Shown here: in pieces, positions 19,236 to 36,939 of the stretch | Numbering within the stretch: the first letter of the stretch is position 1 | Layout of the letters: every line of letters begins with the position of its first letter | NCBI GenBank assembly: GCA_037447605.1 | Contig: CM074818.1 | Span: 1,624,617-1,688,616 of the forward strand | Direction: 5' to 3' | DNA: 64,000 nucleotides | From: Zygnema circumcarinatum SAG 698-1b | Taxonomy: Eukaryota > Plantae > Zygnematophyceae | Made by a program: the position numbers and the translations under genes | The notes under the pieces: model-generated | What the model saw: only the letters and a program-made list of their open reading frames with translations | What the model was told of the DNA's origin: nothing | The model's database searches: none

Positions 19236-19934
19236 CTGTTGACTGTAGGTGTGTACGAAGTACGAACCCTAGTGAGCATGTGTACGGACAATTTGATATG
19301 TACGGTCAAGTCGATATCTGACGATATTTGTCGATAATGTGTACGGTCGTAATATATTTGTAACGCATATTCCAATACGTGGGTGGATAATATCGACATT
19401 TCGAATATATAGTAACAATCAGGGTTTTTCAACGTCATTATATCCGTAATGGCGTCACTACTGGCGCAGGATCTGCAGTGGTGCAATTCCGTTCCCGGAA
19501 AAAAAGTCAGTATATCCATGCTGTTCGTATAAACAGTGTCACTATAACGTGATAAGACTGTACATCGCCCAGGGAATCATTTCTGGAGTAGAGGATTTGG
19601 AGTTTTGGGCAGCGCATCACGACAAAGGAGATAATGTCGGGTGAACAAGGAGCCGACATATTGCCACCGATCGGAAGGCCGAGAGCGGCCCCATCGTCGC
19701 ATCGCACGGCGGTGATTCGCCGCACACCTGGCCTTGAACCCCGTCCCAGGCCCCCGTGTGGCGGGGCCCGAGGCACAGCCACTGATCGGACGGCCGAGAG
19801 TGAGTCGATCTCCGCCGCCCGCCCTCCTTGACTTGAGCCTTCCCTATGTCCAGCGGCGGTCCTTCTCCTCGCAACGGATTGGAGGGAGAGAGGGAGGGAC
19901 GGAAGGAAGGAAGGCGGGCGAAGGGGCGGCAGCC

Positions 19935-22900
19935 ATGGCCACGGCCCTCGCGAGCGCGCTCCTCCTCTGCGCTGCATTCGCGGGTGTCGCTCTCTCCGCA
20001 CGTACGGCTCCCGCCCGCCCTCTCTCGTCCTCTCCTTCCGTCTCTTGTCTCCATCTGACTGTTTTACAGATCTGTGCTTCTATCACAACACTGCTGTGAT
20101 TTTTTTTCCTCGATCGTTTCCTTTCCGATGCTTCACCATTCTTCATTCTGATGTTTTGGGAATGATTTCAAGTTGAAATTTCTCCTAGAATGCTCTTTCC
20201 AAGTGGATTGGTTTCATTCAGTACTTTCCCTTCTACCAGCTACGCAACAGATGCATTGCTCTTCCACATATTTCCGATCTTCATCTTTTTGGTGATGCAG
20301 CACTTACTCCTCCGACGGCCTTCACCTATGTGGGGTTCAACGCCAGCCAACCGCCCATCATGCAAGGCAACACACGAATCGTTGGCAGCAGCCTGCAGCT
20401 TACAGGCATGGTCCAAGCCGTATCTGGCAATGCATTCCATCCGGATCAGGTGACCTTGCTCCGAGAAACAACGACTGGAGGTTGCCAAGCAGCTTCGTTT
20501 AAGGCGAGGTTCTCATTTCTCATCTCCAACAACTTTACTTTCTGTCACGGGGATGGCCTTACTTTCAATTTTGTTGCTTCTAATGCGGACTTGAGCAAGA
20601 TTGGGTTAGACACAGGCTCGAGCCTCGGGTACTCGTACGAAGGATCGACCGAAGTTGGTTCCATAGCAGTCGCATTTGACACGGCCTCAAATCCAGAGAA
20701 CAATGATCCTGATGGAAGACATGTTGGAATACTTGAAAACCTGAATCTCACGACTATCGCATCTGGAACTACTTCCCTCCTTGACGACTTGTCGCCAACC
20801 TCGACGAAGTATGCATGGGTGCAATACAACAGCGATACCAGCAAGTGGTCCATATTTTTGAGCGATGGCGACAGCAAGCCTGCTGACCCCGTCCTCAGCT
20901 ACACCAAGTCCCTTTGCAGCATCCTTCGGCCGCCCAACTGTGCGGACTGCGCCGATGTGACGTCGGCCTTCGTTGGATTCACCGCTTCAACGGGATATTG
21001 CTATGATGCTCATCAGATTTTGTCGTGGAGCTTTGAGAGCAGCTGGACAGGTGCGCTGCCTACTCCTTCATCTCCACGAGAGATTCTTGCCATGATTGAG
21101 AACTGCGATAGAGGAAGGCTCTATGCCTTCAAGTAGTTTTCCTCTCACTTTGTTTGGTAGCATTGAAAGAAGATGATATTTTAAGACTTAGCAGTCCTGA
21201 GAGACGGGGATCAATGCATAAAAGTACTCATGAAGGCACCGTGCGTGGTTTACTCGTTATTTTTCGTGTTCAGCGTAAACTTTCAGGAATGAACTAAACA
21301 CTCGTATTATGTGTATCTAATGTGTTGATTATGAGTCATAGTATGTAGTCACTAGTCTTGAACAGCAAAAACTCATTATCTCTCTTCCACTTATTTCCGA
21401 TCTTCATCTTTTTGGTGATGCAGCACTTACTCCGACGGCCTTCACCTATGTGGGGTTCAACGCCAGTCAACCGCCCATCATGCAAGGCAACACAGGAATC
21501 GTTGGCAGCAGGCTGCAGCTTACAGACATGGTCCAAGCCGTATTTGGCAATGCATTCCATCCGGATCAGGTGACCTTGCTCCGAGAAACAACGACTGGAG
21601 GTTGCCAAGCAGCTTCGTTTAAGGCGAGGTTCTCATTTCTCATCTCCAACAACTTCACTTTCTGTGACGGGGATGGCCTTACTTTCAATTTTGTTGCATC
21701 CAATGCGGACTTGAGCAAGATTGGGTTCGTCAGAGGCTCGAGCCTCGGGTACTCGTACCCAGGATCGACCACAGTTGGTTCCATAGCAGTCGCATTTGAC
21801 ACGCTCTCAAATCCAGAGTTCAATAATCCTGATGGCAGTCATGTTGGAATACTTGAAAATCTGAATTTCACGACTATCGCATCTGGAACTACTTCCCTCC
21901 TTGCAGACTTGTCGCCAACCTCGACGAAGTATGCATGGGTGCAATACAACGGCGATACCAGCAAGTGGTCCATATTCTTGAGCGATGCCGACAGCAGGCC
22001 TGCTGACCCCGTCCTCAGCTACACCAAGTCCCTTTGCAGCATCCTTCGGCCGCCCAACTGTGCGGACTGCGCCGATGTGACGTCGGCCTTCGTTGGATTC
22101 ACCGCTTCAACGGGATATTGCTATGATGCTCATCAGATTTTGTCGTGGAGCTTTGAGAGCAGCTGGACAGGTGCGTTGCCTAATCCTTCATCTCCACGAG
22201 AGATTCTTGCCATGATTGAGAACTGAGATAGAGGAAGGCTCTCGGCCTTCAAGTAGTCTTTCTCTCACTTTGTTTGGTAGCATTGAAAGAACATGATATT
22301 TTAAGTCTTAGTAGTCCTGAGAGATGGGGATCAATGCATAAGAGTACTCATGAAGGCACCGTGCTGATATTTTAAGTCTTAGTAGTCCTGAGAGATGGGG
22401 ATCAATGCATAAAAGTACTCATGAAGGCACCGTGCGTGGTTTACTCGTTTTTTTTCGTGTTGAGCGTAAACTTTCAGGAATGAAGTAAACACTCGTATTA
22501 TGTGTATGCAATGTGTTGATTATGAGTCATAGTAGGTAGTCACTAGTCTTGAACAGCAAAAACTCATTATCTCTTCCACTTATTTCCGATCTTTATCTTT
22601 TTGGTGATGCAGCACTGACTCCGACGGTCTTCACGTATGTGGGTTTCAACGCCAGTCATCCTCCCACCATGCAAGGCAACATAGGAATTGTTGGCAGCAG
22701 GCTGCAGCTTACAGGCATGGTGCAATCCGTATCTGGCAATGCATTCCATCCGGAACAGGTGAACTTGCTCCGAGAAACAACGACTGGAGGTTGCCAAGCA
22801 GCGTCGTTCAGGGCGAGGTTCTCGTTTCTCATCTCCAACAACTTCACTTTCTGTGACGGGGATGGCCTTACTTTCACTTTTGTTGCTTCCAATGCGGACT

Positions 22901-24079
22901 TGAGCAAGATTGGGTCCGTCACAGGCGGGACCCTCGGGTACTCGTACGAAGGATCGACCACAGTTGGTTCCATAGCAGTCGCATTTGACACGGTCTCAAA
23001 TTCAGACAACAATGATCCTGATGGAAGACATGTTGGAATACTTGAGAACCTGAGTTTCACAACTATCGCATCTGAAACTACGTCCCTCCTTGACGACTCA
23101 TCGCCAACCTCGACGAAGAATGCATGGGTGCACTACAACGGCGATACCAGTCAGTGGTCCATATTCTTGAGCGATGGCGACAGCAAGCCTGCTGACCCCG
23201 TCCTCAGCTACACCAAGTCCCTTTGCAGCATCCTTCGGCCGCCCAACTGTGCGGACTGCGCCGATGTGACGTCTGCCTTCGTTGGATTCACCGCTTCAAC
23301 GGGGTACTGCTATGNNNNNNNNNNTGATGCAGCACTGACTCCGACGGTCTTCACGTATGTGGGTTTCAACGCCAGTCATCCTCCCACCATGCAAGGCAAC
23401 ATAGGAATTGTTGGCAGCAGGCTGCAGCTTACAGGCATGGTGCAATCCGTATCTGGCAATGCATTCCATCCGGCTCAGGTGACCTTGCTCCGAAATAAAA
23501 CAACTGGAGGTTGCCAAGCAGCTTCTTTAAAGGTGAGGTTCTCGTTCCTCATTTTCAACGACTTCACTTTCTGTGATGGAGATGGCCTTACTTTCACTTT
23601 TGTTGCTTCCAATGCGGACTTGAGCAAGATTGGGTCCGTCACAGGCGGGACCCTCGGGTACTCGTACGAAGGATCGACCACAGTTGGTTCCATAGCAGTC
23701 GCATTTGACACGGTCTCAAATTCAGACAACAATGATCCTGATGGAAGACATGTTGGAATACTTGAGAACCTGAATTTCACAACTATCGCATCTGAAACTA
23801 CGTCCCTCCTTGACGACTTGTCGCCAACCTCGACGAAGTATGCATGGGTGCAATACAACGGCGATACCAGCAAGTGGTCCATATTTTTGAGCGATGGCGA
23901 CAGCAAGCCTGCTGACCCCGTCCTCAGCTACACCAAGTCCCTTTGCAGCATCCTTCGGCCGCCCAACTGTGCGGACTGCGCCGATGTGACGTCTGCCTTC
24001 GTTGGATTCACCGCTTCAACGGGGTACTGCTATGATGCGCATCAGATTTTGTCGTGGAGCTTTGAGAGCAGCTGGAGAG
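19935..24079 (+). CDS. Secreted L-type lectin gene A: signal-peptide exon plus four tandem lectin-domain exons
   Basis: SP exon 19935-20001 (MATALASALLLCAAFAGVALSA, phase-1 donor). Lectin exons 20301-21050, 21424-22170, 22613-(gap at 23315) and 23333-24079, each TGATGCAG|CA...TGG-NNN-G|GTGCG. Lectin_legB-like motifs: F-Y-GF, LQLT, ASF..RFSFLI, GDGLTF, IAVAFDT, DP..HVGI, AWVQY, AFVGFTASTG, H.ILSWSF. Which exons are co-spliced is unknown. Confidence 0.8.
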
Positions 24080-24744
24080 GTGCGTTGCCTACTCCCTCAT
24101 CTCCACGAGAGATTCTTGCCATGATTGAACACTGAGGTAGAGGAAGGTTCTCGGCCTTCAAGTAGTCCTTCTCTCACTTTGTTTGGTGGCATTGAAAGAA
24201 GATGATATTCTAAGACTTAGCAGTCCTGAGAGATGGGGATCAATGAATAAAAGTACTCATAAGGGCATCGTGCGTGGTTCTCTCGTTTTTTTTCGGTTTG
24301 AGCGTAAACTTTCAGGAATGAAGTTAGCACTCGTATTTTTTGCATGCAATGTGTTGATTATGAATCATACTAGGTAGTCACTAGTCTTGAACAACAAAAA
24401 CTCATTTTTTTACGGCATAAGGGAACGTGTGATAGCGCATCGGACGGCAGTGCGTTACAGTGGGATGCTTTCCTGCTTGTTTTCTTTCACATGCGCTTGA
24501 ACTGTAGGGTTTTACGATTACATTATAAAGATTATCAAATATTTGTAAATGTACTCCTTTATTCTATTCTCTTTCCCCCTCTCATGTCATCTTCTTTTTT
24601 TTAATGTCGTTCGTAAATGTACATCCGTCACTAAGATGATCCAACCGAGCTAGGAAACTTTTGTTTTAAGCACTGAAATCTTTAACATCTTTAAGCAGGT
24701 AGTTGTATAATGGTTATAATCTTACTTAGTTTACTTTTTGTGGC

Positions 24745-24809
24745 ACCTCCTCCACCACCTTCACCGCCTCCACCTTGCCGGCCGCCTCCTCCTCCACCAC
24801 CAACTCCTC
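24745..24809 (+). pseudogene. Decayed Pro-rich linker exon of gene A
   Basis: Homologous to the gene B linker exon 34145-34261. The donor C|GTAAGAATACTTGG is kept, but the acceptor TTGCAG|CTCC reads TGTGGCACC (no AG). Confidence 0.65.
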
Positions 24810-25249
24810 GTAAGAATACTTGGTTTTTTCTACCTTTCTCCGCATATGGTTGACTGTTTTCCAAGGCTTCCAACTGCGACATGTTCACTCCGTTCTACCG
24901 ATAGAATCAGCAAATTCCTTATTTTAGGCCAAAAACTTGTCGTACATTACCAAAACTTTTAGAGTCTGTGGATTATGTAAGTTTGACGTCACACTTGTTC
25001 CTTCACGAATTACGTTCCAGCTCATGATTGATCTCAGATGTGATGCAAAAATTCTTCGCCCGCTTCTGGCCACGCATGTGATCGTGTCTACACGTTTCAA
25101 GCAATCCATGCTTGCGTTATTTGCACGCTTTGAATAGTCCACATTCACATCTCCTCATATTTAGCCACCTTGTGATGCAGCTCTCACCACCACTTTCTCC
25201 TTCTTCTTCTTTCTTTTTTTTCTTCTTTCTCCTTTTTTCTTTGCACCAG

Positions 25250-28200
25250 CAGCACCAGCAGCACCACCACCACCAGCAGCAGAAGCACCACCAGCAGCAG
25301 CAGCAGCAGCATCAACAACAGTAACAGCAACAGCACCAGCAACACCAGCAGCAGAAAATTCAGCAACAACAACACCAGCAGCAGAAGCACCAACAACAAC
25401 AACACCAGCAGCAGAAGGATCAGCAACAACAACACCAGCAGCAGAAGGATCAGCAACAGCAACACCAGCAGCAGAAGGATCAGCAACAACAACACCAGCA
25501 GCAGAAGGACCAGCAACAACAACACCAGCAGCAGAAGGATCACCAACAACAACACCAGCAGCAGAAGGATCACCAACAACAACACCAGCAGCAGAAGCAC
25601 CAACAACAACAACACCAGCAGCGAAGGATCAGCAACAGCAACACCAGCAGCAGAAGCACCAGCAACAACAACACCAGCAGCAAAAGCACCACCAGCAGCA
25701 GCAGCAGCAGTACCAATAGCAGTAACAGCAGCAGCACCAGCAGCAGTGTTAGTAGCAGCAGGAGGAGCAACAGCAGCAGCAACAGCAGCAACACCAGCAG
25801 AATCAATAGCAGTAACAGCAGCAGCACCAGCAACAGCACCAGCAACAGCAACACCAGCAGCAGAAGGATCAGCAACAACAACAACAACACCAGCAGCAGA
25901 AGGATCATCAACAACAACACCAGCAGCAGAAGCACCAACAACAACAACACCAGCAGCAGAAGCACCAACAACAACAACACCAGCAGCAGAAGGATCAGCA
26001 ACAACAACACCAGCAACAGAAGGATCAGCAACAACAACACCAGCAGCAGAAGGACCAACAACAACAACACCAGCAGCAGAAGGATCAGCAACAACAACAC
26101 CAGCAGCAGAAACACCAGCAACAACAACACCAGCAGCAGAAGGATCAGCAACAGCAACACCTACAGCAGAAGGATCAGCAACAACATTACCAGCAGCAGA
26201 AGCACCAGCAACAACAACACCAGCAGCAGAAGGATCAGCAACAACAACACCAGCAGCAGAAGGATCAGCAACAACAACACCAGCAGCAGAAGCACCAACG
26301 ACAACAACACCAGCAGCAGAAGGATCAGCAACAACAACAACAACACCAGCAGCAGAAGGATCAGCAACAGCAACACCAGCAGCAGAAGGATCAGCAACAA
26401 CAACACCAGCAACAGAAGCACCAGCAACAACAACACCAGCAGCAGAAGGACCAGCAGCACCTGAAGCAACACCAGCACCAGCAGCAGATGCAGATGCAGC
26501 ACCAAAAGTAGATGCATCAGCACCATCAGCAGAAGGACCAGCAACACCTGAAGCAGCACCAGCAGCAGAAGCACCATCAACAACAACACCAGCAGCAGAA
26601 GGATCAGCAACAACAACACCAGCAGCAGAAGGATCAGCAACAACAACACCAGCAGCAGAAGCACCAGCAACAACAATACCAGCAGCAGAAGGATCAGCAA
26701 CAACAACACCAGCAGCAGAAGGACCAGCAACACCTGAAGCAGCACCAGCACCAGCAGCAGATGCAGCACCAAAAGTAGATGCATCAGCACCATCAGCAGA
26801 AGGACCAGCAGCATCTGAAGCAGCACCAGCACCAGCAGCAGATGCAGCACCAAAAGTAGATGCATCAGCACCATCAGCAGAAGGACCAGCAACACCTGAA
26901 GCAGCACCAGCACCAGCAGCAGATGCAGCACCAAAAGTAGATGCATCAGCACCATCAGCAGAAGGACCAGCAACACCTGAAGCAGCACCAGCACCAGCAG
27001 CAGATGCAGCACCAAAAGTAGATGCATCAGCACCATCAGCAGAAGGACCAGCAACACCTGAAGCAGCACCAGCACCAGCAGCAGATGCAGCACCAAAAGT
27101 AGATGCATCAGCACCATCAGCAGAAGGACCAGCAACACCTGAAGCAGCACCAGCACCAGCAGCAGATGCAGCACCAAAAGTAGATGCATCAGCACCATCA
27201 GCAGAAGGACCAGCAGCATCTGAAGCAGCACCAGCACCAGCAGCAGATGCAGCACCAAAAGTAGATGCATCAGCACCATCAGCAGAAGGACCAGCAACAC
27301 CTGAAGCAGCACCAGCACCAGCAGCAGATGCAGCACCAAAAGTAGATGCATCAGCACCATCAGCAGAAGGACCAGCAGCATCTGAAGCAGCACCAGCACC
27401 AGCAGCAGATGCAGCACCAAAAGTAGATGCATCAGCACCATCAGCAGAAGGACCAGCAACACCTGAAGCAGCACCAAAAGTAGATGCATCAGCACCATCA
27501 GCAGAAGGACCAGCAACACCTGAAGCAGCACCAGCACCAGCAGCAGATGCAGCACCAAAAGTAGATGCATCAGCACCATCAGCAGAAGGACCAGCAACAC
27601 CTGAAGCAGCACCAGCACCAGCAGCAGATGCAGCACCAAAAGTAGATGCATCAGCACCATCAGCAGAAGGACCAGCAGCATCTGAAGCAGCACCAGCACC
27701 AGCAGCAGATGCAGCACCAAAAGTAGATGCATCAGCACCATCAGCAGAAGGACCAGCAACACCTGAAGCAGCACCAGCACCAGCAGCAGATGCAGCACCA
27801 AAAGTAGATGCATCAGCACCATCAGCAGAAGGACCAGCAGCATCTGAAGCAGCACCAGCACCAGCAGCAGATGCAGCACCAAAAGTAGATGCATCAGCAC
27901 CATCAGCAGAAGGATCAGCAACACCTGAAGCAGCACCAGCACCAGCAGCAGATGCAGCACCAAAAGTAGATGCATCAGCACCATCAGCACCAGCAGCAGG
28001 ACCAGCACAGCATGCAGCACCTGCAGCTCAAAGCAGAAGGACCAGCAACACTGAAGCAGCAGCACCAGCAGCAGATGCAGCACCAAAAGTAGATGCATCA
28101 GCACCATCAGCAGAAGGACCAGCAGCATCTGAAGCAGCACCAGCACCAGCAGCAGATGCAGCACCAAAAGTAGATGCATCAGCACCATCAGCAGAAGGAC

Positions 28201-29520
28201 CAGCAACACCTGAAGCAGCACCAGCACCAGCAGCAGATGCAGCACCAAAAGTAGATGCATCAGCACCATCAGCAGAAGGACCAGCAACACCTGAAGCAGC
28301 ACCAGCACCAGCAGCAGATGCAGCACCAAAAGCATCAGCACCATCAGCAGAAGGACCAGCAACACCTGAAGCAGCACCAGCACCAGCAGCAGATGCAGCA
28401 CCAAAAGTAGATGCATCAGCACCATCAGCAGAAGGACCAGCAACACCTGAAGCAGCACCAGCACCAGTAGATGCATCAGCACCATCAGCAGAAGGACCAG
28501 CAGCATCTGAAGCAGCACCAGCACCAGCAGCAGATGCAGCACCAAAAGTAGATGCATCAGCACCATCAGCAGAAGGACCAGCAACACCTGAAGCAGCACC
28601 AGCACCAGCAGCAGATGCAGCACCAAAAGTAGATGCATCAGCACCATCAGCAGAAGGACCAGCAGCATCTGAAGCAGCACCAGCACCACCAGCAGCAGAA
28701 GCAGCACCAGCAGCAGAAGGATCAGCAACAACAACACCAGCAGGACCAGCAACACCTGAAGCAGCACCAGCACCAGCAGCAGATGCAGCACCAAAAGTAG
28801 ATGCATCAGCACCATCAGCAGAAGGACCAGCAGCATCTGAAGCAGCACCAGCACCAGCAGCAGATGCAGCACCAAAAGTAGATGCATCAGCACCATCAGC
28901 AGAAGGACCAGCAACACCTGAAGCAGCACCAGCACCAGCAGCAGATGCAGCACCAAAAGTAGATGCATCAGCACCATCAGCAGAAGGACCAGCAGCATCT
29001 GAAGCAGCACCAGCACCAGCAGCAGATGCAGCACCAAAAGTAGATGCATCAGCACCATCAGCAGAAGGACCAGAAGGACCAGCAAGCACCTCAGCAGAAG
29101 ACCAGCACCAGCAGCACCAGCACCAGCAGCAGATGCAGCACCAAAAGTAGATGCATCAGCACCATCAGCAGAAGGACCAGCAGCATCTGAAGCAGCACCA
29201 GCACCAGCAGCAGATGCAGCACCAAAAGTAGATGCATCAGCACCATCAGCAGAAGGACCAGCAACACCTGAAGCAGCACCAGCACCAGCAGCAGATGCAG
29301 CACCAAAAGTAGATGCATCAGCACCATCAGCAGAAGGACCAGCAACACCTAAAGCAGCACCAGCACCAGCAGCAGAAGCACCAACAACAACAACACCAGC
29401 AGCAGAAGGATCAGCAACAACAACACCAGCAGCAGAAGGATCAGCAACAACAACACCAGCAGCAGAAGGATCAGCAACAGCAACACCAGCAGCAGAAGCA
29501 CCAACAACAGCACCAGACGC
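25250..29520 (+). repeat. Ala/Pro/Thr-rich coding-type tandem repeat (AGP/mucin-like); probable exon of gene A with frameshifts
   Basis: 27-bp units (TTTPAAEGS / TTTPAAEAP) and about 30 copies of an 81-bp unit (PATPEAAPAPAADAAPKVDASAPSAEG, variant PAASEA). A polypyrimidine tract 25195-25242 is followed by a phase-1 CAG at 25247-25249. The APT frame is open 25623-29090; frame breaks occur near 25622 and 29095. Confidence 0.8.
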
Positions 29521-29888
29521 ACCAGCTTGCTTTCTTACGTGCTTGCGTGCTTGTGGATTAACCTAGTTTGGTTGACATATCGTTGACTGTTTTCCAAGGC
29601 TTCCAATTTCAACATGTTCACTACGTATTTTCGATAGAATCAGCATTTTTCTTACTGTAGGCCAAAACGTTCGTACAACACCAAAGATTTTAGAGTTTGT
29701 GGATTAAGCATTTGACGTCACACATGTTCCTTCACCAAGTACGTGTCAGCTCATGATTGAACTCAGATGGGATGCACAAAGTCCTATTATAAGTGCTGAC
29801 CACGCCTGTGAACGTGGCTGCACGTTTCAAGATGTTCATGCTTGCATTATTTGTACAACTCTTGATATTCCGCCTCTTTGTGATGCAG

Positions 29889-30653
29889 CTCTCACCACCC
29901 CCGCAGCCTTCGACTACGCAAGTTTTTACGGTGTCAATCCTTTCATTCAGCAAAGCAATGCAAGAAAGGGGTTTGACGGAAGCTTGATACTAACGGATGC
30001 TGACAAAGGACAAGCGGGGGTTGCACTTTATCAGTCTCCCGTCATATTGGCACGTGAAGCGGGTGGGGGTTGCCAAGCAGCCTCCTTTGAGACTAAATTT
30101 TCGTCCGTTATCAAAGGAGGAGGATTTTTTGCATGTTATGGGGATGGTTCCACATTCACCATCGTTGCCATCAATGCGGATTTGTACAGCTTTGGAACAG
30201 GCAGTGGTTCCACCCTCGCGTTTACCTACACGGCTTCCCCGACAGTGGGCTCAATTGCCGTTAAATTTGACACTAACTCAAATGCAGAGTTACAGGATCC
30301 TCCCCCGGAAGAGGATTCTTCGGGGGAACATGTGGGCATACTCAGGGACTTCAACGCCACAACCATTACATCAAGTACAACTTCACTTGTGTCGTCTTCT
30401 GGTTCCTTTGACATACTTCCAAAATTCGCTTAGGTGAAATACAACAGTCAAATGAGCCTCTGGTCTATCTTTGTGAGTGCTTCTGATTTCAAGCCTGATT
30501 TGCCTCTCTTGACCTACACCGAGTTATTGTGCACAATTCTTCGACCCTCCAAGTGCGGGACGTGTGCGAACGTCTCCTCGGCATTCCTTGGATTCACTGC
30601 CGCGACAGGACAAGTCTGCTACAGCAGGCAATTGATTTGGTCATGGTCCTTGT
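29889..30653 (+). pseudogene. Type-B L-lectin exon of gene A with a premature stop
   Basis: Paralogous to 34583-35356. AAA TTC GCT TAG GTG (stop 30431-30433) aligns with AAA TTT GCT TGG GTG in gene B. The frame resumes after the stop and the phase-1 donor T|GTAAG is kept. Confidence 0.8.
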
Positions 30654-30893
30654 GTAAGTTACTCATCAAGAAACTTACACGAGTGACTGGGCAGTGACTG
30701 GGTTTCTCTTTCTGAGTAAATCTTGAGGTAATGTTGTAGATCCTTTGGCGTTACGAAAGCGCTACCCCCGAGATTGTCTACGTGCCTATTTCCTTTTGCA
30801 AATTCCTTTTATAGACGATGGTCGCTATTCGGAAGTCTCTTTATCTCGGTTCGGACAAAAGAGCAACATGAAGAGCGACGGTGAAACGGTCCA

Positions 30894-31159
30894 CAGGTCG
30901 GACCAGTGGATCAGCAACCATTGGACAACCATTAGATGGCAATGGTTGGATGTCTACTGGTTCGAATGGTTGTTTCAGTCCGGCGCCAATGGTTGGCAAC
31001 CAGTCTAATGGTTGCTAACCATTGGCATCCACTGCTTCCAAACCATTCGACTGGTTGCCAAACATTGGCATCCACTGGTTCCGAACCATTCGAATGGTTG
31101 TTTTGATCCGCGCCAACGGTTGGCAACCAGTCGAATGGTCGGTCTAATGGTCCGACCTG
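30894..31159. mobile_element. MITE (hAT-like), 266 bp, filled with CAACCATTGG/CCAATGGTTG repeats
   Basis: TIR CAGGTCGGACCA(G/T)T(G/A)G, 14/16 identical. Flanks ACGGTCCA and TGAGTCCA share 5 of 8 bases (possibly an eroded TSD). Related copies start at 17338 and about 57752. Confidence 0.65.
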
Positions 31160-31956
31160 TGAGTCCATTCGTCATGTACTGTTTCTAAAACAACTCGAAA
31201 TCGGGTAATGCCGGAACGCAACGGGACGGACTCGCGCGACCATGGAACGGGGCCCCTCCCTTCGTGTCCTGGCCGTACGGCGGCCCACGGCACGGGCGGA
31301 GACTCGCGGCGGCCGGGCGGGCGGACCGTACAGGCCGCGGCTCGGGAAGGCTGCGAAGGGCCGTTGACCAGTGACCGTTGACCGTCGCGCCGTCGGAGTG
31401 ACCGACAAAAAAAAGGTGAACTCGATCGCCCTCGCGAGGGCGATGCGCGCAAAAAAGGACATGGGAAAACGACACACTGAAAATCAAAATATTTGTAATA
31501 TGTTTCAAGAAGTTACACTAAAATGACAGACAAAAATGGAAAAAAAATTGTAATATCTTTAATTTTGTTTTTTTGCCCTCCTCCGGCCGTACCTCGCCCG
31601 GTCGCGCCGGTCGCTCCGGTCGCTCCGGTCGCTCCGATCGCTCCGGTCGCTCAGGTCGCCGCCGGTCCCTGCGGAGGGGGACCGTCGTCGGCCGGCACGC
31701 GGGAGGCCGCCACGTGGCGCGTGCTGCACAACACGACAAGACGGCAACCGTACGGTCAAGGACCATACGGCAATGCGTACACGTAGCCCTCCGCCGCGCG
31801 ATGCAGAGCTGCCGATCGGACGGCCGAGCGCGACTCGATCTTCGCCGCCCACCCGGCCGCGTTGACTTGAGCCTTCCCTATTTCTGGCGGCGCCCCATCT
31901 CCTCGCGGCGGAAGGGAGGGAGGGAGGGAAGGAAGGCGGGCGAAGGGGAGGCAGCC

Positions 31957-34900
31957 ATGGCCACGGCCCTCGCGAGCGCGCTCCTCCTCTGTGCTGCGTT
32001 AGCGAGCGTGGCCGCTCTCTCCACGCGTACGTATCTCGCCCGCCCTCTCTCGCACGTGCCGCAATGCATGGCCGCCTTCTTACTGCCTTGCTGCAACGCC
32101 TGCGAATGCAGAAGGAGGGTCTCAATGTCACAGCATTGGGCCAGCAGATGTGTTAGAGATTGCTGTGCGGATTTTTCTGCTTCCGAGCTCGTAGTGAGGC
32201 GATGGAGGCAAGGGAGGTCGCAAGGCTGGAAGGAGTGTGCAATGGGAGTTCGGAGTGCTCGTAGAAGTGCTGTTGTCAGTCCTTCTGGCATAGTAAATAC
32301 GGTGTGAGCGATAGTCTCTTGGATCAATTTACTGTCTACCGCTCTCTCCCTTCCTCCATCTGCCGCCCTTTTCCTTCCTCTATCTTGTCTCTATCTGACT
32401 GCTCTACAGAACTTTGCTGCTAAAGCAACACTGCTGTGCTGTTTTTTTCTCCTCGACCGTTTCCTTTCCGAATGCTTCACCAATCGTCATTCGGATTTTT
32501 GGGAATGATTCCAAGTTTGAATTTCTCACAGAAAGCTCTGCCCAAGTGGATTAGTTCTATTCAGTACTCTCCCTTCTACCAGCTACGAAACAGATGCATT
32601 GCTCTTCCACTTATTTCCGGTATTCTACATATTTTTGGTGATTCAGCACTTACTCCTCCAACGGTCTTCACTTATGCGGGTTTCAACGGCAGCCAACCGC
32701 CCATCACGCAAGGCAACACAACAATCGTTGGCAGCAGGCTGCAGCTTACAGACGAATTCCAAGCCGTATCTGGCAATGCATTCCATCCGGATCAGGTGAC
32801 CTTGCTCCGAAAAAAAACGACTGGAGGTTGCCAAGCAGCTTCGTTTAAGTCGAGGTTCTCGTTTCTCATTTCCAACAACTTCACTTTCTGTGACGGAGAT
32901 GGTCTTACTTTCACTTTTGTTGCTTCCAATGCGAACTTAAGCAACATTGGGTTAGTCCTTGGCGGGAGCCTCGGGTACTCGTACGAAGGATCGGCCAAAG
33001 TTGGTTCCATAGCCGTTGCATTCGACACGTTCCCCAATTCTGAGTTAAATGACCCTGATGGAAGACATGTTGGAATACTTGAAAATTTGAACTTTACGAC
33101 TGTTAAAGCAAAAACTACGTCCCTCCTTGACGACTTGTCGCCAACCTCGACGAAGTATGCGTGGGTGCAATACAACGGCGATACCAGCAAGTGGTCCATA
33201 TTTTTGAGCGATGGCGACAGCAGGCCTGCTGACCCCGTCCTCAGCTACACCAAGTCCCTTTGCAGCATCCTTCGGCCGCCCAACTGTACGGACTGCGCCA
33301 ATGTGACGTCGGCCTTCGTTGGATTCACCGCTTCAACGGGGTACTGCTATGATGCTCATCAGATTTTGTCGTGGAGCTTTGAGAGCAGCTGGACGGGTGC
33401 GTTCCCTCCTCCCTCATCTCCACGAGAGCCGTCAGAGTCCGTTTGATGCTTGCCATGATTGAGCACTGATCTTGAGGAAGGCTCTCCGCCTTTAAGAAGA
33501 CTTTCTCTCACTTTACGTGTGGTTTGGTGGCAAGGAAGCAAGATTATAGTTTAAGACTTAGCAGTCCTGAGAGATGGGCATGAATGCGTAAAATTACCTG
33601 TTAAAGCACCGTGAGTGGTTCTTTCGTTATTGTTCGTGTTATGCGTGGACTTTCAAGAATTAAGTAAATACTCGTATTATGCGTATGCAATGTGTTGATT
33701 ATGAGTCATAGGAAGTAGTCACTGAACTTGAACAGTAAACGTGCATGGCACAAGCAAAAGTGTGAAAGCGTATCTGACGGCAGTGCGTTACGGTCGGATG
33801 TTTTCCTGCTAGTACTGCAGGGTTACATAATCGCATTTAAAGGAACATCTCATATTTGTAAAGGTTCTCCTTTGTTTTAAACTGTTGCCACGACTTTTCG
33901 TGTGCAGCATTCAAGTCGCCCCCCCCCGCTCCACCTTCGCCACCTCCGCGCCGTAAGTGGAACTATTCTCTTTCCCCCTCGTCATGTCATCTCCTTTTTT
34001 TTAATGTCGTTTGTAAATACACCATTTCCGTCTCTAACACGTCACAATCGAGCTAAAAACTTCGATTCTACGCAATGAAATCTTTTTTATCTTCGAGCAG
34101 CTGCTTGCTTTATGAGCTTATATCAAGTTTAATTTTTGTTGCAGCTCCGCCACCTTCCCCACCTCCTCCACCCCCCCCACCACCTTCACCACCTCCTCCG
34201 CCACCTTCACCACCTTCACCGCCTCCACCTCCCCGGCCGCCTTCTCCACCCCCAACTCCGCGTAAGAATACTTGGTTTCTTCTCCCTTTCTCTGCATATG
34301 GTCGGCTTTTTTCCAAGACTTCCAATTGCAACACGTTCACGACGTATTAATGTTAGAACCAGCAATTTCCTTACTGTAGGCCGAAAACGTTCGTACAGCA
34401 CCAAAGCTTTTAGAGTTTGTGGATTAAGCAAATTTGACGTCACAAATGTTCCTTCACCTATTACGTGCTGATCACGCCTGTGAATGTGTCTATACGTTTC
34501 AGGCTGTTCATGCTTGCGTTATCTGCACGCCTTGAATATTCCACATTCACAACTCTTGATATTCCGCCACTTTGTGATGCAGCTCTCACCACCCCCGCAG
34601 CCTTCGCCTTCTCAAGTTTTGTTTCGAGCACTCCACTCATTCTGAAAGGCAATGCGACAATTGCGTCTGATGCAAGCTTGGTACTTACGGATGCTGGACA
34701 AGGACTAGCGGGGGTGGCACTTTATCGGTCTCCCGTCACATTGACGCGAAAAGCGGGTGGGGGTTGCCAAGCAGCCTCTTTTAAGACTTCATTTTCGTTC
34801 ATTGTCGAAGAGAACGGTTTTGGATGTAATGGGGACGGCTTCACATTCAGCATCGTTGCCTCCAATGCGGATTTGTACAGCTTTGGAACAGGCAGTGGTT

Positions 34901-35839
34901 CCACACTCGCGTTTACCTACACGGCTTCTCCGACAGTGGGCTCAATTGCCGTTAAATTTGACACTTTCCAAAATGAAGAGTTTAAGGATCCTCCGGGGGA
35001 ACACGTGGGCATACTCAGGGACTTTAACGCCACTACCATTAAATCGCAAATTACTTCAATTGTGTCCAATCCTGACTACTACCAAGGCTACGACGGTTAC
35101 CATTACTATCCGAAATTTGCTTGGGTGGAATACAACAGTCCAACGAGCCTCTGGTCTATCTTTGTGAGTGATTTTGATTCAAAGCCCGCTTCGCCTCTCT
35201 TGACCTACACCAAGTCCCTGTGCACAATTCTTCGACCCTCCAAGTGCGGGACGTGTGCGAAGGTCGACTCGGCATTCCTTGGCTTCACTGCCGCGACAGG
35301 AGCGTGCTACAACAGGCAATCGATTTTGTCGTGGAACTTTGCGAGCTCGTGGCCCGGTAAGCTTCTTTATCAAGAACATGTGACTGGATTGGATTCAGTT
35401 CATTGGATCAGGGGGTATGACGGACGGACTTGAAAAGTGCTTGGTTTTTGAATAGCTTTAATCCGGTCCAACGTCCTTGAAATGTACTCACAATACAGAC
35501 CACCTGGGGCACACCAACCTTCGACCAGACCAGCATGTCATTTTTCAAAAATACTCAAGTTCAATCGTTTCTTGTTTGCTGTCGATGTTGCGATATCAAA
35601 AAGTTGAAATTACCAAAGGAGGGCGTTTTGCATGATTTGAACCTGCTATTCCTCCAGAACTGTGCCATTGCCAATTTATTCTGTAACAGTGCTCTGATAC
35701 TCTACTTTGAGATCGTGCAGCGACTGCGCCTCCCCCTCCCCGCCGCCCTCCCCCTTCCCGGCGCCCTCCTCCTCGCCGCCCTCCCCCTGCACGGCCGCCT
35801 CCACGCCGCCCGAACCCTCCGCCTGCGAGAGCTCCTTAG
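31957..35839 (+). CDS. Secreted di-lectin / extensin-like chimeric glycoprotein (gene B), about 609 aa
   Basis: All introns are phase 1. Exons: 31957-32026 (signal peptide), 32647-33396 (lectin A), 34145-34261 (APPPSPPPPPPPPSPPP...), 34583-35356 (lectin B), 35721-35839 (ATAPPPPRRPPPSRRPPPRRPPPARPPPRRPNPPPARAP-stop). No stops in the joined frame. Confidence 0.82.
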
Positions 35840-36939
35840 ACCAACCTGGATGGATGGCTCAGATTGGTTGGTTGGCCCGTTTGCTTAGTTGGTTGGTTGG
35901 TTGGTTGGCTCGTTAGTTGGTTGGTTGACATGGGAGTTCATTTTGGGCCGTTATGAGGAGGATTCAGTGCAACTTTCGTGAACTGAGGGTCTCTAAGTCA
36001 TATGACGACAGTAGTGATCTTTGATTGCAGTAGGTTTTTATGATGGTGGGAAACTGAGTATTAAGCGTTGGAGGTAGAGTGCTGGCTCTGGGCGGAGTGA
36101 TGGAACCGCTCGTGTGTCAGCCTCAATTATGTGTCTGCATGGCGGGTTTGTGTTCAATAATGACGTTTTCTAGTATCCCCTTCACGTTAAACGGTAGCTA
36201 AGCTTGCGCTTTTATGTTTCAGAACCTAGTTTGCAATATGAAATGCAGAGTTGAAACTGATGATCCTCATCTTTTTTAGAAAGAAAAAACGAAAAGATCT
36301 GTGATACTCTCTTGACCTTGTACACACTTTACAGCATGCATCTATTCTACGCCACTGATCTTTACAATGCGGATATGGTTGTGGCTGATCGTCAACTCAC
36401 CACACGCTCTCTCCAATCAGTGGCGGGTCTACGGTCTTCTTTGTGAGAGCGTAACCTCCCCTCAGAATTTGAAACGCTCGTCGGCACTGAACGCCCTTGA
36501 TGTGGCATTAGGGCGTGTCGAGTTATTAGTAGTGCTAAAAACGAGGTTACTAAGTACTAAAATTCATGGCGATCTCAAACCTAAGCCGACCCGACCCGAA
36601 GTCAAGTGTTGGTCAGTCCGCGGGTCAATGTTGCGGCGATTGACCTGCACGGTTTACTCCAAAAGGGCACTTCTTCGAACGATGTTGTTCGCACCCGAAA
36701 GCGGCGCCGACCAGGGAATGGCGAAAATCGCGTCATCGTTGGATCTTTTCTGCACACGTGGCGAGCCGTAATTGGTGGCGAATGTTGAAAGTTTTTTTTA
36801 GCATAACCGCACCACGAACGGAGGGCGGCCCTCACTTTGAGTTTGTCGCAACTTCGCCCTCGCGCGGGCCGTGACATGACATGACGTGACACACCCCAAA
36901 TCTCGTTTCGACACGTGATTTGGTCGAGACATTTCGTAC

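Follow-up and report, generated by a model that had tools for sequence, protein, structure and literature searches.

Modular extracellular proteins are extended by symmetric domain exons of phase 1-1, a regularity known as the phase rule of exon shuffling. Lectins also occur in chimeric wall proteins that combine a lectin with a hydroxyproline-rich part, such as the Solanaceae lectins and the volvocine pherophorin-like proteins with their globule-rod-globule build. Tandem exon duplication has been reviewed (PMC9013439). In clusters of the Dscam1 type, in Drosophila, tandem exons are used one per transcript under an exclusivity mechanism (PMC9013439, PMC6071210); the mechanisms considered here are competing RNA pairing, steric hindrance, incompatible spliceosomes, and loss of frame on double inclusion. 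The locus compared with these systems lies in a 64,000-nucleotide stretch of DNA (the window) from the alga Zygnema circumcarinatum SAG 698-1b (contig CM074818.1, positions 1,624,617 to 1,688,616, forward strand). In this locus, termed gene 1, a single signal-peptide (SP) exon is followed by an array of tandem lectin exons, A1 to A4; a paralog, gene 2, lies farther downstream. Gene 1 very probably encodes a secreted chain of at least four lectin domains with a mucin-like tail, and this chain very probably arose by recent tandem exon duplication.

The best description of gene 1 is a secreted chimeric lectin gene in which a symmetric domain exon was recently duplicated in tandem, a known mechanism. 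As in other cases of tandem exon duplication, its unit consists of an exon with flanking intron pieces, encodes one whole domain, is of phase 1-1, and is included serially. Unlike those cases, the amplification is very recent (synonymous divergence, dS, 0.045-0.16), has occurred in a streptophyte alga, and concerns a 250-residue lectin domain rather than a small EGF- or Ig-type module.

Downstream of the SP exon, which encodes a signal peptide of typical form, are four tandem units of 1.1-1.2 kb, whose exons are 92-96% identical to each other (Table 1), well above what chance would give. A1, A2, and A4 share the acceptor ...tgatgcag/CAC and the donor (C/G)AG/gtgcg. Every exon is of phase 1-1, and the exon lengths, 747-750 nt, are multiples of 3, so that double inclusion preserves the frame. 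A segment at 19766-20027, which aligns with 31796-32052 at 80%, is the sole copy of its kind within gene 1, and sequence comparison across the window finds no second SP exon and no promoter or upstream copy inside the array. Thus, two features claimed in the original prediction hold, namely a single SP exon with a phase-1 donor and the lack of any SP exon or promoter copy between the units. Its claim of four complete lectin exons stands for the four tandem units and for A1, A2, and A4, each complete and of phase 1-1, but not for A3, which is cut by an assembly gap at nt 702.

The splicing of the array has been followed in Logan contigs from four runs (X1, X2, X3, and X6; three studies of the same alga) placed on positions 19700-24900. 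Exon bins mostly have a depth of 5-170 across the four runs, while the spacers are barely covered (0/0.43/0/0 at 21092-21265 and 0/5.3/0/0 at 22310-22483), indicating that the contigs are RNA. The SP exon is joined to A1 (20001>20301, GT..AG) in X1, X2, and X3, with 76 nt and 0 mismatches on the side of the SP exon and 5' untranslated region (UTR). A1 is joined to A2 (21050>21424, GT..AG) in X2 and X6, and a joint into the A3 acceptor is present in 4/4 runs, placed as 22170>22613 in X3 and X6 and as 21050>22613 in X1 and X2. The donor side of these exon-to-exon joints is only 23-24 nt long and identical between A1 and A2; consequently, the joint into A3 is no proof that A2 is skipped. In run X2, a loose end of 143 nt at the A4 donor (24079) begins with a 30-mer that is unique in the window, at 25250-25279, and the site at 25250 is preceded by a long pyrimidine tract and ...ccag. 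The array is therefore not the end of the gene, since A4 is spliced onward to 25250.

With an A1/A2-type donor joined to the A2 and A3 acceptors and the A4 donor joined to 25250, the multi-lectin chain, one of the outcomes that the original prediction had allowed, is the one that the RNA favors. Among the junctions proposed there, 20001>20301 and 21050>21424 are seen; those from the SP exon to the later copies (20001>21424, 20001>22613, and 20001>23333) are absent among the contigs of the four runs, from which rare isoforms could escape. All four units are transcribed: each of A1, A2, A3, and A4 has unit-specific contigs with 0-1 mismatches (for A2, 21668-21802 with 0 mismatches; for A3, 22610-22793 and 23025-23216). 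There are thus no fewer than four distinct exon sequences.

Gene 2, about 12 kb downstream, carries a single A-type lectin exon. A tblastn search with A1 detects three further lectin exons in the window, all beyond the array. The lectin A exon of gene 2 (32647-33396) is 86% identical to A1 at the amino acid level, and it is followed by two Pro-rich exons of the SPPP type, of 45 nt (33908-33952) and 117 nt (34145-34261), and by a lectin B exon (34583-35356). The internal exons are all of phase 1-1; spliced together in the model, the exons yield a single open frame of 624 residues. An RNA loose end at 24771 carries the junction between linker and lectin B that this model predicts. Starting at the upstream region, the two genes are colinear, and gene 2 reaches its downstream exons through the same lectin-A donor that the array exons use.

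Comparison of the two genes reveals the nature of the array spacers. In gene 1, what follows each A exon is homologous to the intron at 33397-33739 of gene 2. Within the array, the spacers differ by a p-distance of 0.046-0.117, versus an exon dS of 0.045-0.156; relative to gene 2, the spacer p-distance is 0.15-0.175, versus an exon dS of 0.19-0.24. Because they are homologous to the gene 2 intron, diverge about as much as synonymous sites, and have almost no RNA depth, the array spacers are introns. The inter-exon introns are 373-442 nt long with ordinary GT..AG signals, and that between A2 and A3 carries a 71-bp duplication (22294-22435; 2.0 copies at 98% in Tandem Repeats Finder, TRF), which explains the greater length of this unit (1.19 kb). 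The unit junction reads ...AAAAACTCATTAT/CTCTTCCAC..., and the ~41 nt before each acceptor stem from the 3' part of intron 1. Each repeat unit thus comprises the tail of intron 1, the exon, and the 5' part of the next intron, which is the signature of tandem exon duplication. Both flanking intron pieces are present in the unit, and the single-copy state is found in gene 2.

Together, these findings suggest how the array was probably built. A secreted two-lectin gene of the wall type would first have been duplicated as a whole, giving rise to gene 1, with gene 2 retaining the presumed ancestral layout of SP, lectin A, Pro-rich rod, and lectin B. A 1.12-kb segment of gene 1, running from ~41 nt before the end of intron 1 through the complete lectin-A exon and ~330 nt into the intron after it, would then have been tandemly duplicated at least 3 times. 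Each symmetric copy would bring its own acceptor, branch region, and donor, so that the spliceosome could include the copies in series. The predicted product is SP-A1-A2-A3-(gap)-A4, in which the domains abut through a junction of a few residues, ...ESSWT-A-LTPT.... The A4 donor skips a dead Pro-rich linker and joins a long mucin-like exon rich in Thr, Pro, and Ala. If this scenario holds, the growth of a domain repeat by exon duplication has been caught early, with its single-copy ancestral state adjacent in gene 2, and the locus bears on how streptophyte algae assemble extracellular glycan-binding proteins from symmetric phase-1 exons.

Table 1. Features of gene 1 and its surroundings, in positions of the window
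Feature	Position	Strand	Description
Gene 1 upstream region and 5' UTR	19766..19934	+	common to paralog gene 2
Signal-peptide exon	19935..20001	+	67 nt, 22 codons + 1 nt; phase-1 donor GTACGG
Lectin exon A1	20301..21050	+	750 nt; phase 1-1; Pfam PF00139, E 7e-36
A1-A2 intron	21051..21423	+	5' ~330 nt from the ancestral downstream intron, 3' ~41 nt from intron 1
Lectin exon A2	21424..22170	+	747 nt; phase 1-1; Pfam E 1e-33
A2-A3 intron	22171..22612	+	contains 71-bp tandem duplication
Lectin exon A3	22613..23314	+	first 702 nt assembled; Pfam E 8e-29, profile positions 4-221/250
Assembly gap	23315..23324		10-N placeholder; hides A3 end, spacer, and possibly more units
Lectin exon A4	23333..24079	+	747 nt; Pfam E 4e-33; first ~125 nt doubtful
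Post-A4 intron	24080..25249	+	A4 donor loose end joins 25250
Relic Pro-rich linker exon	24747..24809	+	acceptor AC where gene 2 has AG; homologous to gene 2 exon 34145-34261
Thr/Pro/Ala-rich repeat exon	25250..29563	+	4.3 kb; 10-residue PAAEGSATTT units, then ~27-residue APKVDASAPSAEGPATPEAAPAPAADA units (TRF, translation)
Type-B lectin exon of gene 1	29889..30653	+	TAG (30431-30433) at a family-invariant Trp
Paralog gene 2	31957..35840	+	SP, lectin A, two Pro-rich exons, lectin B, Pro/Arg-rich last exon

The translations of all four exons match the Pfam family Lectin_legB (PF00139), and the match extends over the whole domain with 101-124 bits (cut-off 26.3; profile positions 3-237/250). An AlphaFold2 model of A1 has a predicted local distance difference test score (pLDDT) of 94 and a predicted template modeling (TM) score of 0.92. 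In a Foldseek search with this model, the top 50 matches are all legume lectins, pea lectin included, with TM scores of 0.74-0.81; the fold is the jelly-roll β-sandwich. Pea lectin 2BQP matches over the full-length domain (E 1e-10, ~26% identity). In the alignment with 2BQP, the sugar-binding residues Asp84 (A1 numbering) and Asn130 and four metal ligands, among them Asp126, Asp135, and His140, are kept. A Glu that is a Mn ligand is replaced by Ala124 in all copies, and Asp135 is replaced by Asn in A2. Unlike pea lectin, whose subunits are separate and associate, the array domains contain extra Cys pairs and are predicted to be chained in one polypeptide. The visible copies all keep open frames. 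Thus, the copies look functional as judged from their sequence, with carbohydrate binding predicted.

Of 249 residues, 45 differ among A1-A4, with hardly any differences in the C-terminal third. The segments homologous to loops B and C are enriched in such variable sites (13/35 versus 32/214 elsewhere, p = 0.003). By the Nei-Gojobori method, the ratio of nonsynonymous to synonymous differences per site (pN/pS) is 4-6.6 in the 35 codons of these two loops and 0.28-0.49 elsewhere. The difference between loops and the rest has a Fisher p of 0.0014-0.0026 in 4/5 pairs and of 0.06 for A1-A2. The history of the copies is blurred by gene conversion, as seen in the alternating blocks of A3 and A4. From this pattern, the scaffold seems to be under purifying selection and the predicted sugar-binding site to be diversifying, though neither is proved. 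If all units are carried on one molecule and the protein is secreted, the product would be a multivalent binder of wall or matrix glycans with domain-specific specificities. It would be a polyvalent lectin of the legume type; its copies have already diverged, mainly in two sugar-binding loops.

Similar chains exist elsewhere at greater distance. An exhaustive HMMER search finds no protein with more than 40% identity, and the nearest relatives themselves carry 2-6 legume-lectin domains. In a feature-based atlas search, the A1 domain falls among streptophyte legume lectins. Word-indexed protein searches with the A1 domain and with the open frame across A3, gap, and A4 yield neither a match nor a full-length product from annotation or transcripts. 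The best-scoring relatives of A1 in the library resemble gene 1 in having several PF00139 domains per chain: P0001 has 4 domains and P0006 has 6, both in bacterial-type architectures, and P0002, a eukaryotic transcript, has 2 domains and a kinase. They differ in their identity of at most 40% and in their partners (DUF4347, Calx-beta, GSDH, TSP3, and kinase), and none of P0001, P0006, and P0002 combines an SP, a lectin chain, and a Thr/Pro/Ala tail. Gene 2, with its SP, globular lectin, SPPP-type rod, and second globular lectin, is like the chimeric lectin/hydroxyproline-rich proteins, and it shares the signal peptide and SPPP-type Pro-rich rod of extensin-like chimeric wall proteins. In gene 1, by contrast, the Pro-rich rod is no longer used, and the lectins follow one another directly, with a mucin-like repeat after them.

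Several observations weigh against a chain of the kind described. The RNA consists of short contigs of 100-360 nt rather than single molecules, and these do not phase the units on one transcript. Contigs of paralogs also cross-map onto the array stretch, as is evident from variants derived from gene 2 (for example at 21495-21496, 23971, and 23983). Skipping from A1 to A3 is indistinguishable from splicing of A2 to A3, because the donor side is too short, and both the donor of A3 and the true acceptor of A4 are concealed by the gap. Unspliced contigs (24047-24649 and 24136-24900) cross the A4 donor at a depth of ~8, compared with ~5-106 for exon bins of the same runs. The loop limits used for the selection test were set after the alignment had been seen. 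Lastly, a loss of 1 nt near 25623 shifts the assembled frame of the repeat exon, leading to a stop at 25717 that may not be the true C-terminus. The repeat carries on in another frame to 29147 and then in a third to a stop at 29564, with a second break at ~29100; either the assembly of this 4.3-kb exon contains two indels or the protein ends early.

There is an even chance that the array is partly mis-assembled, with a unit number other than four and an A3/A4 mosaic that stems from collapse or chimerism at the gap, a reading that is compatible with the chain. The gap sits within the array. Its left flank is nt 702 of the A3 exon (23314) and its right flank is acceptor position -8; therefore, the two sides are not continuous. 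What is missing amounts to at least 45 nt of exon and ~365-435 nt of spacer (~410-480 nt), or to extra whole units besides. The first 149 nt on the right side of the gap (23325-23473) repeat the start of A3 without a difference, and between A3 and A4, blocks with 0 differences alternate with blocks with 16-18. The sole RNA contig over 23410-23610 has, in 4/4 runs, 10 mismatches to the assembly, all at 23410-23458, and fits A4-specific sequence from 23459 on, which means either a mis-assembled 5' end of A4 or an expressed unit that the assembly lacks. However, the unit-specific contigs argue for the reality of A1-A4, and gene conversion, another possible source, could also give the mosaic. The unit count is not derivable from RNA depth, as the word depth of a contig is not copy number. 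A 528-residue open reading frame (ORF) that spans the gap (22549-24135) was rejected as an artefact of the 10-N placeholder, and annotation based on ORFs or otherwise automated will, together with the gap, misread gene 1.

It is unlikely that the chain is real and is accompanied by exon skipping, for example of A2 between A1 and A3, which would yield isoforms with a varying number or set of lectins. In X1 and X2, one joint was placed as 21050>22613, and any skip would stay in frame, as all exons are symmetric; however, the same contig fits A2>A3 equally well, given a donor side that does not distinguish A1 from A2. A broader version is similarly improbable, in which the array is a fast-evolving module of variable copy number, with extra units in the gap, positive selection on the loops, and regulated skipping that would give varied sets of lectins. 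If that version were true, it would mean a combinatorial repertoire for glycan recognition in an alga close to land plants.

Alternative last exons are less probable still. Here, read-through of a donor to a nearby stop, with polyadenylation in the spacer, would yield proteins with 1, 2, or 3 and more lectins. The original prediction had proposed this from a stop after each exon with a common tail. There is indeed an in-frame stop 54-84 nt past each visible donor, but the tails are not uniform, ending in ...MIENCDRGRLYAFK after A1, ...MIEN after A2, and ...MIEH after A4. A conserved C-terminus was rejected, because the tail has diverged just as fast as the remaining spacer and its frame in gene 2 is broken by a 17-nt insertion; the read-through stop is intron sequence. 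The unspliced contigs over the A4 donor would be expected from such terminal exons, but intron 1 has a similarly low unspliced background (depth 4-8 over intron 1 and the post-A4 intron), the spacers after A1 and A2 have a depth of 0-0.4 in their first bins, and contigs do not reveal poly(A) ends.

The weakest reading, that of interchangeable cassettes in which the SP exon is joined to one lectin exon per transcript in a mutually exclusive, Dscam-like choice, giving a repertoire of single-lectin proteins, shares with Dscam1-type clusters the tandem homologous exons that match in length and phase and differ mainly at binding surfaces, here the sugar-binding loops, but is very unlikely, as neighboring copies are spliced together (21050>21424 and 22170>22613 link exons of the cluster), no contig joins the SP exon to A2, A3, or A4, double inclusion stays in frame, the inter-exon introns are of ordinary length and signals, and an inverted-repeat search for docking or selector elements detects only a short palindrome inside the exons. 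Gene 1 is thus no plant-lineage analogue of Dscam.

Downstream of the array, gene 1 retains traces of the layout seen in gene 2. The homolog of the first gene 2 linker exon (33908-33952) is deleted, and the 24079>25250 joint bypasses the relic of the second, whose acceptor is AC; thus, gene 1 lacks a usable SPPP-type Pro-rich rod in its transcript. Entry at 25250 in phase 1 gives AAPAAPPPP..., and then PAAEGSATTT repeats for ~125 residues. Copies of ~340 nt of the intron that precedes lectin B flank the repeat exon, at 24850-25191 and 29576-29888. The type-B exon of gene 1, which is 49% identical to A1 (tblastn) and 77% identical to the gene 2 B exon in nucleotides, is probably a relic, located downstream of the present stop.

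Some contigs point beyond the window. A joint at 20501>21905 (AG..GC, one run) was set aside as out of register and not splice-like, and 19975>24749 was rejected as a gene 1 splice, since its 28 foreign letters indicate a paralog SP exon joined to a linker exon. Two further loose-end or insert sequences were searched for in the window and are absent from it, and thus derive from paralogs elsewhere. Loose ends at 21048, 22168, and 19975 reveal at least one more expressed paralog outside the window. In one such paralog, a lectin A exon is spliced to a linker beginning GCATACAAGGTGCCCCC; in another off-window transcript, an SP-exon variant is joined directly to a PPSPP linker exon, with a high depth (153 in X1).

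Between the two genes, at 30880-31150, copies of a ~20-nt motif (CCATTGG / GGTTGCCAAC-type), in both direct and inverted orientation, form a cluster that may be the remnant of a small transposon or of a miniature inverted-repeat transposable element. Upstream of gene 2, at 31600-31660, there is a minisatellite of the GGTCGCTCC type.

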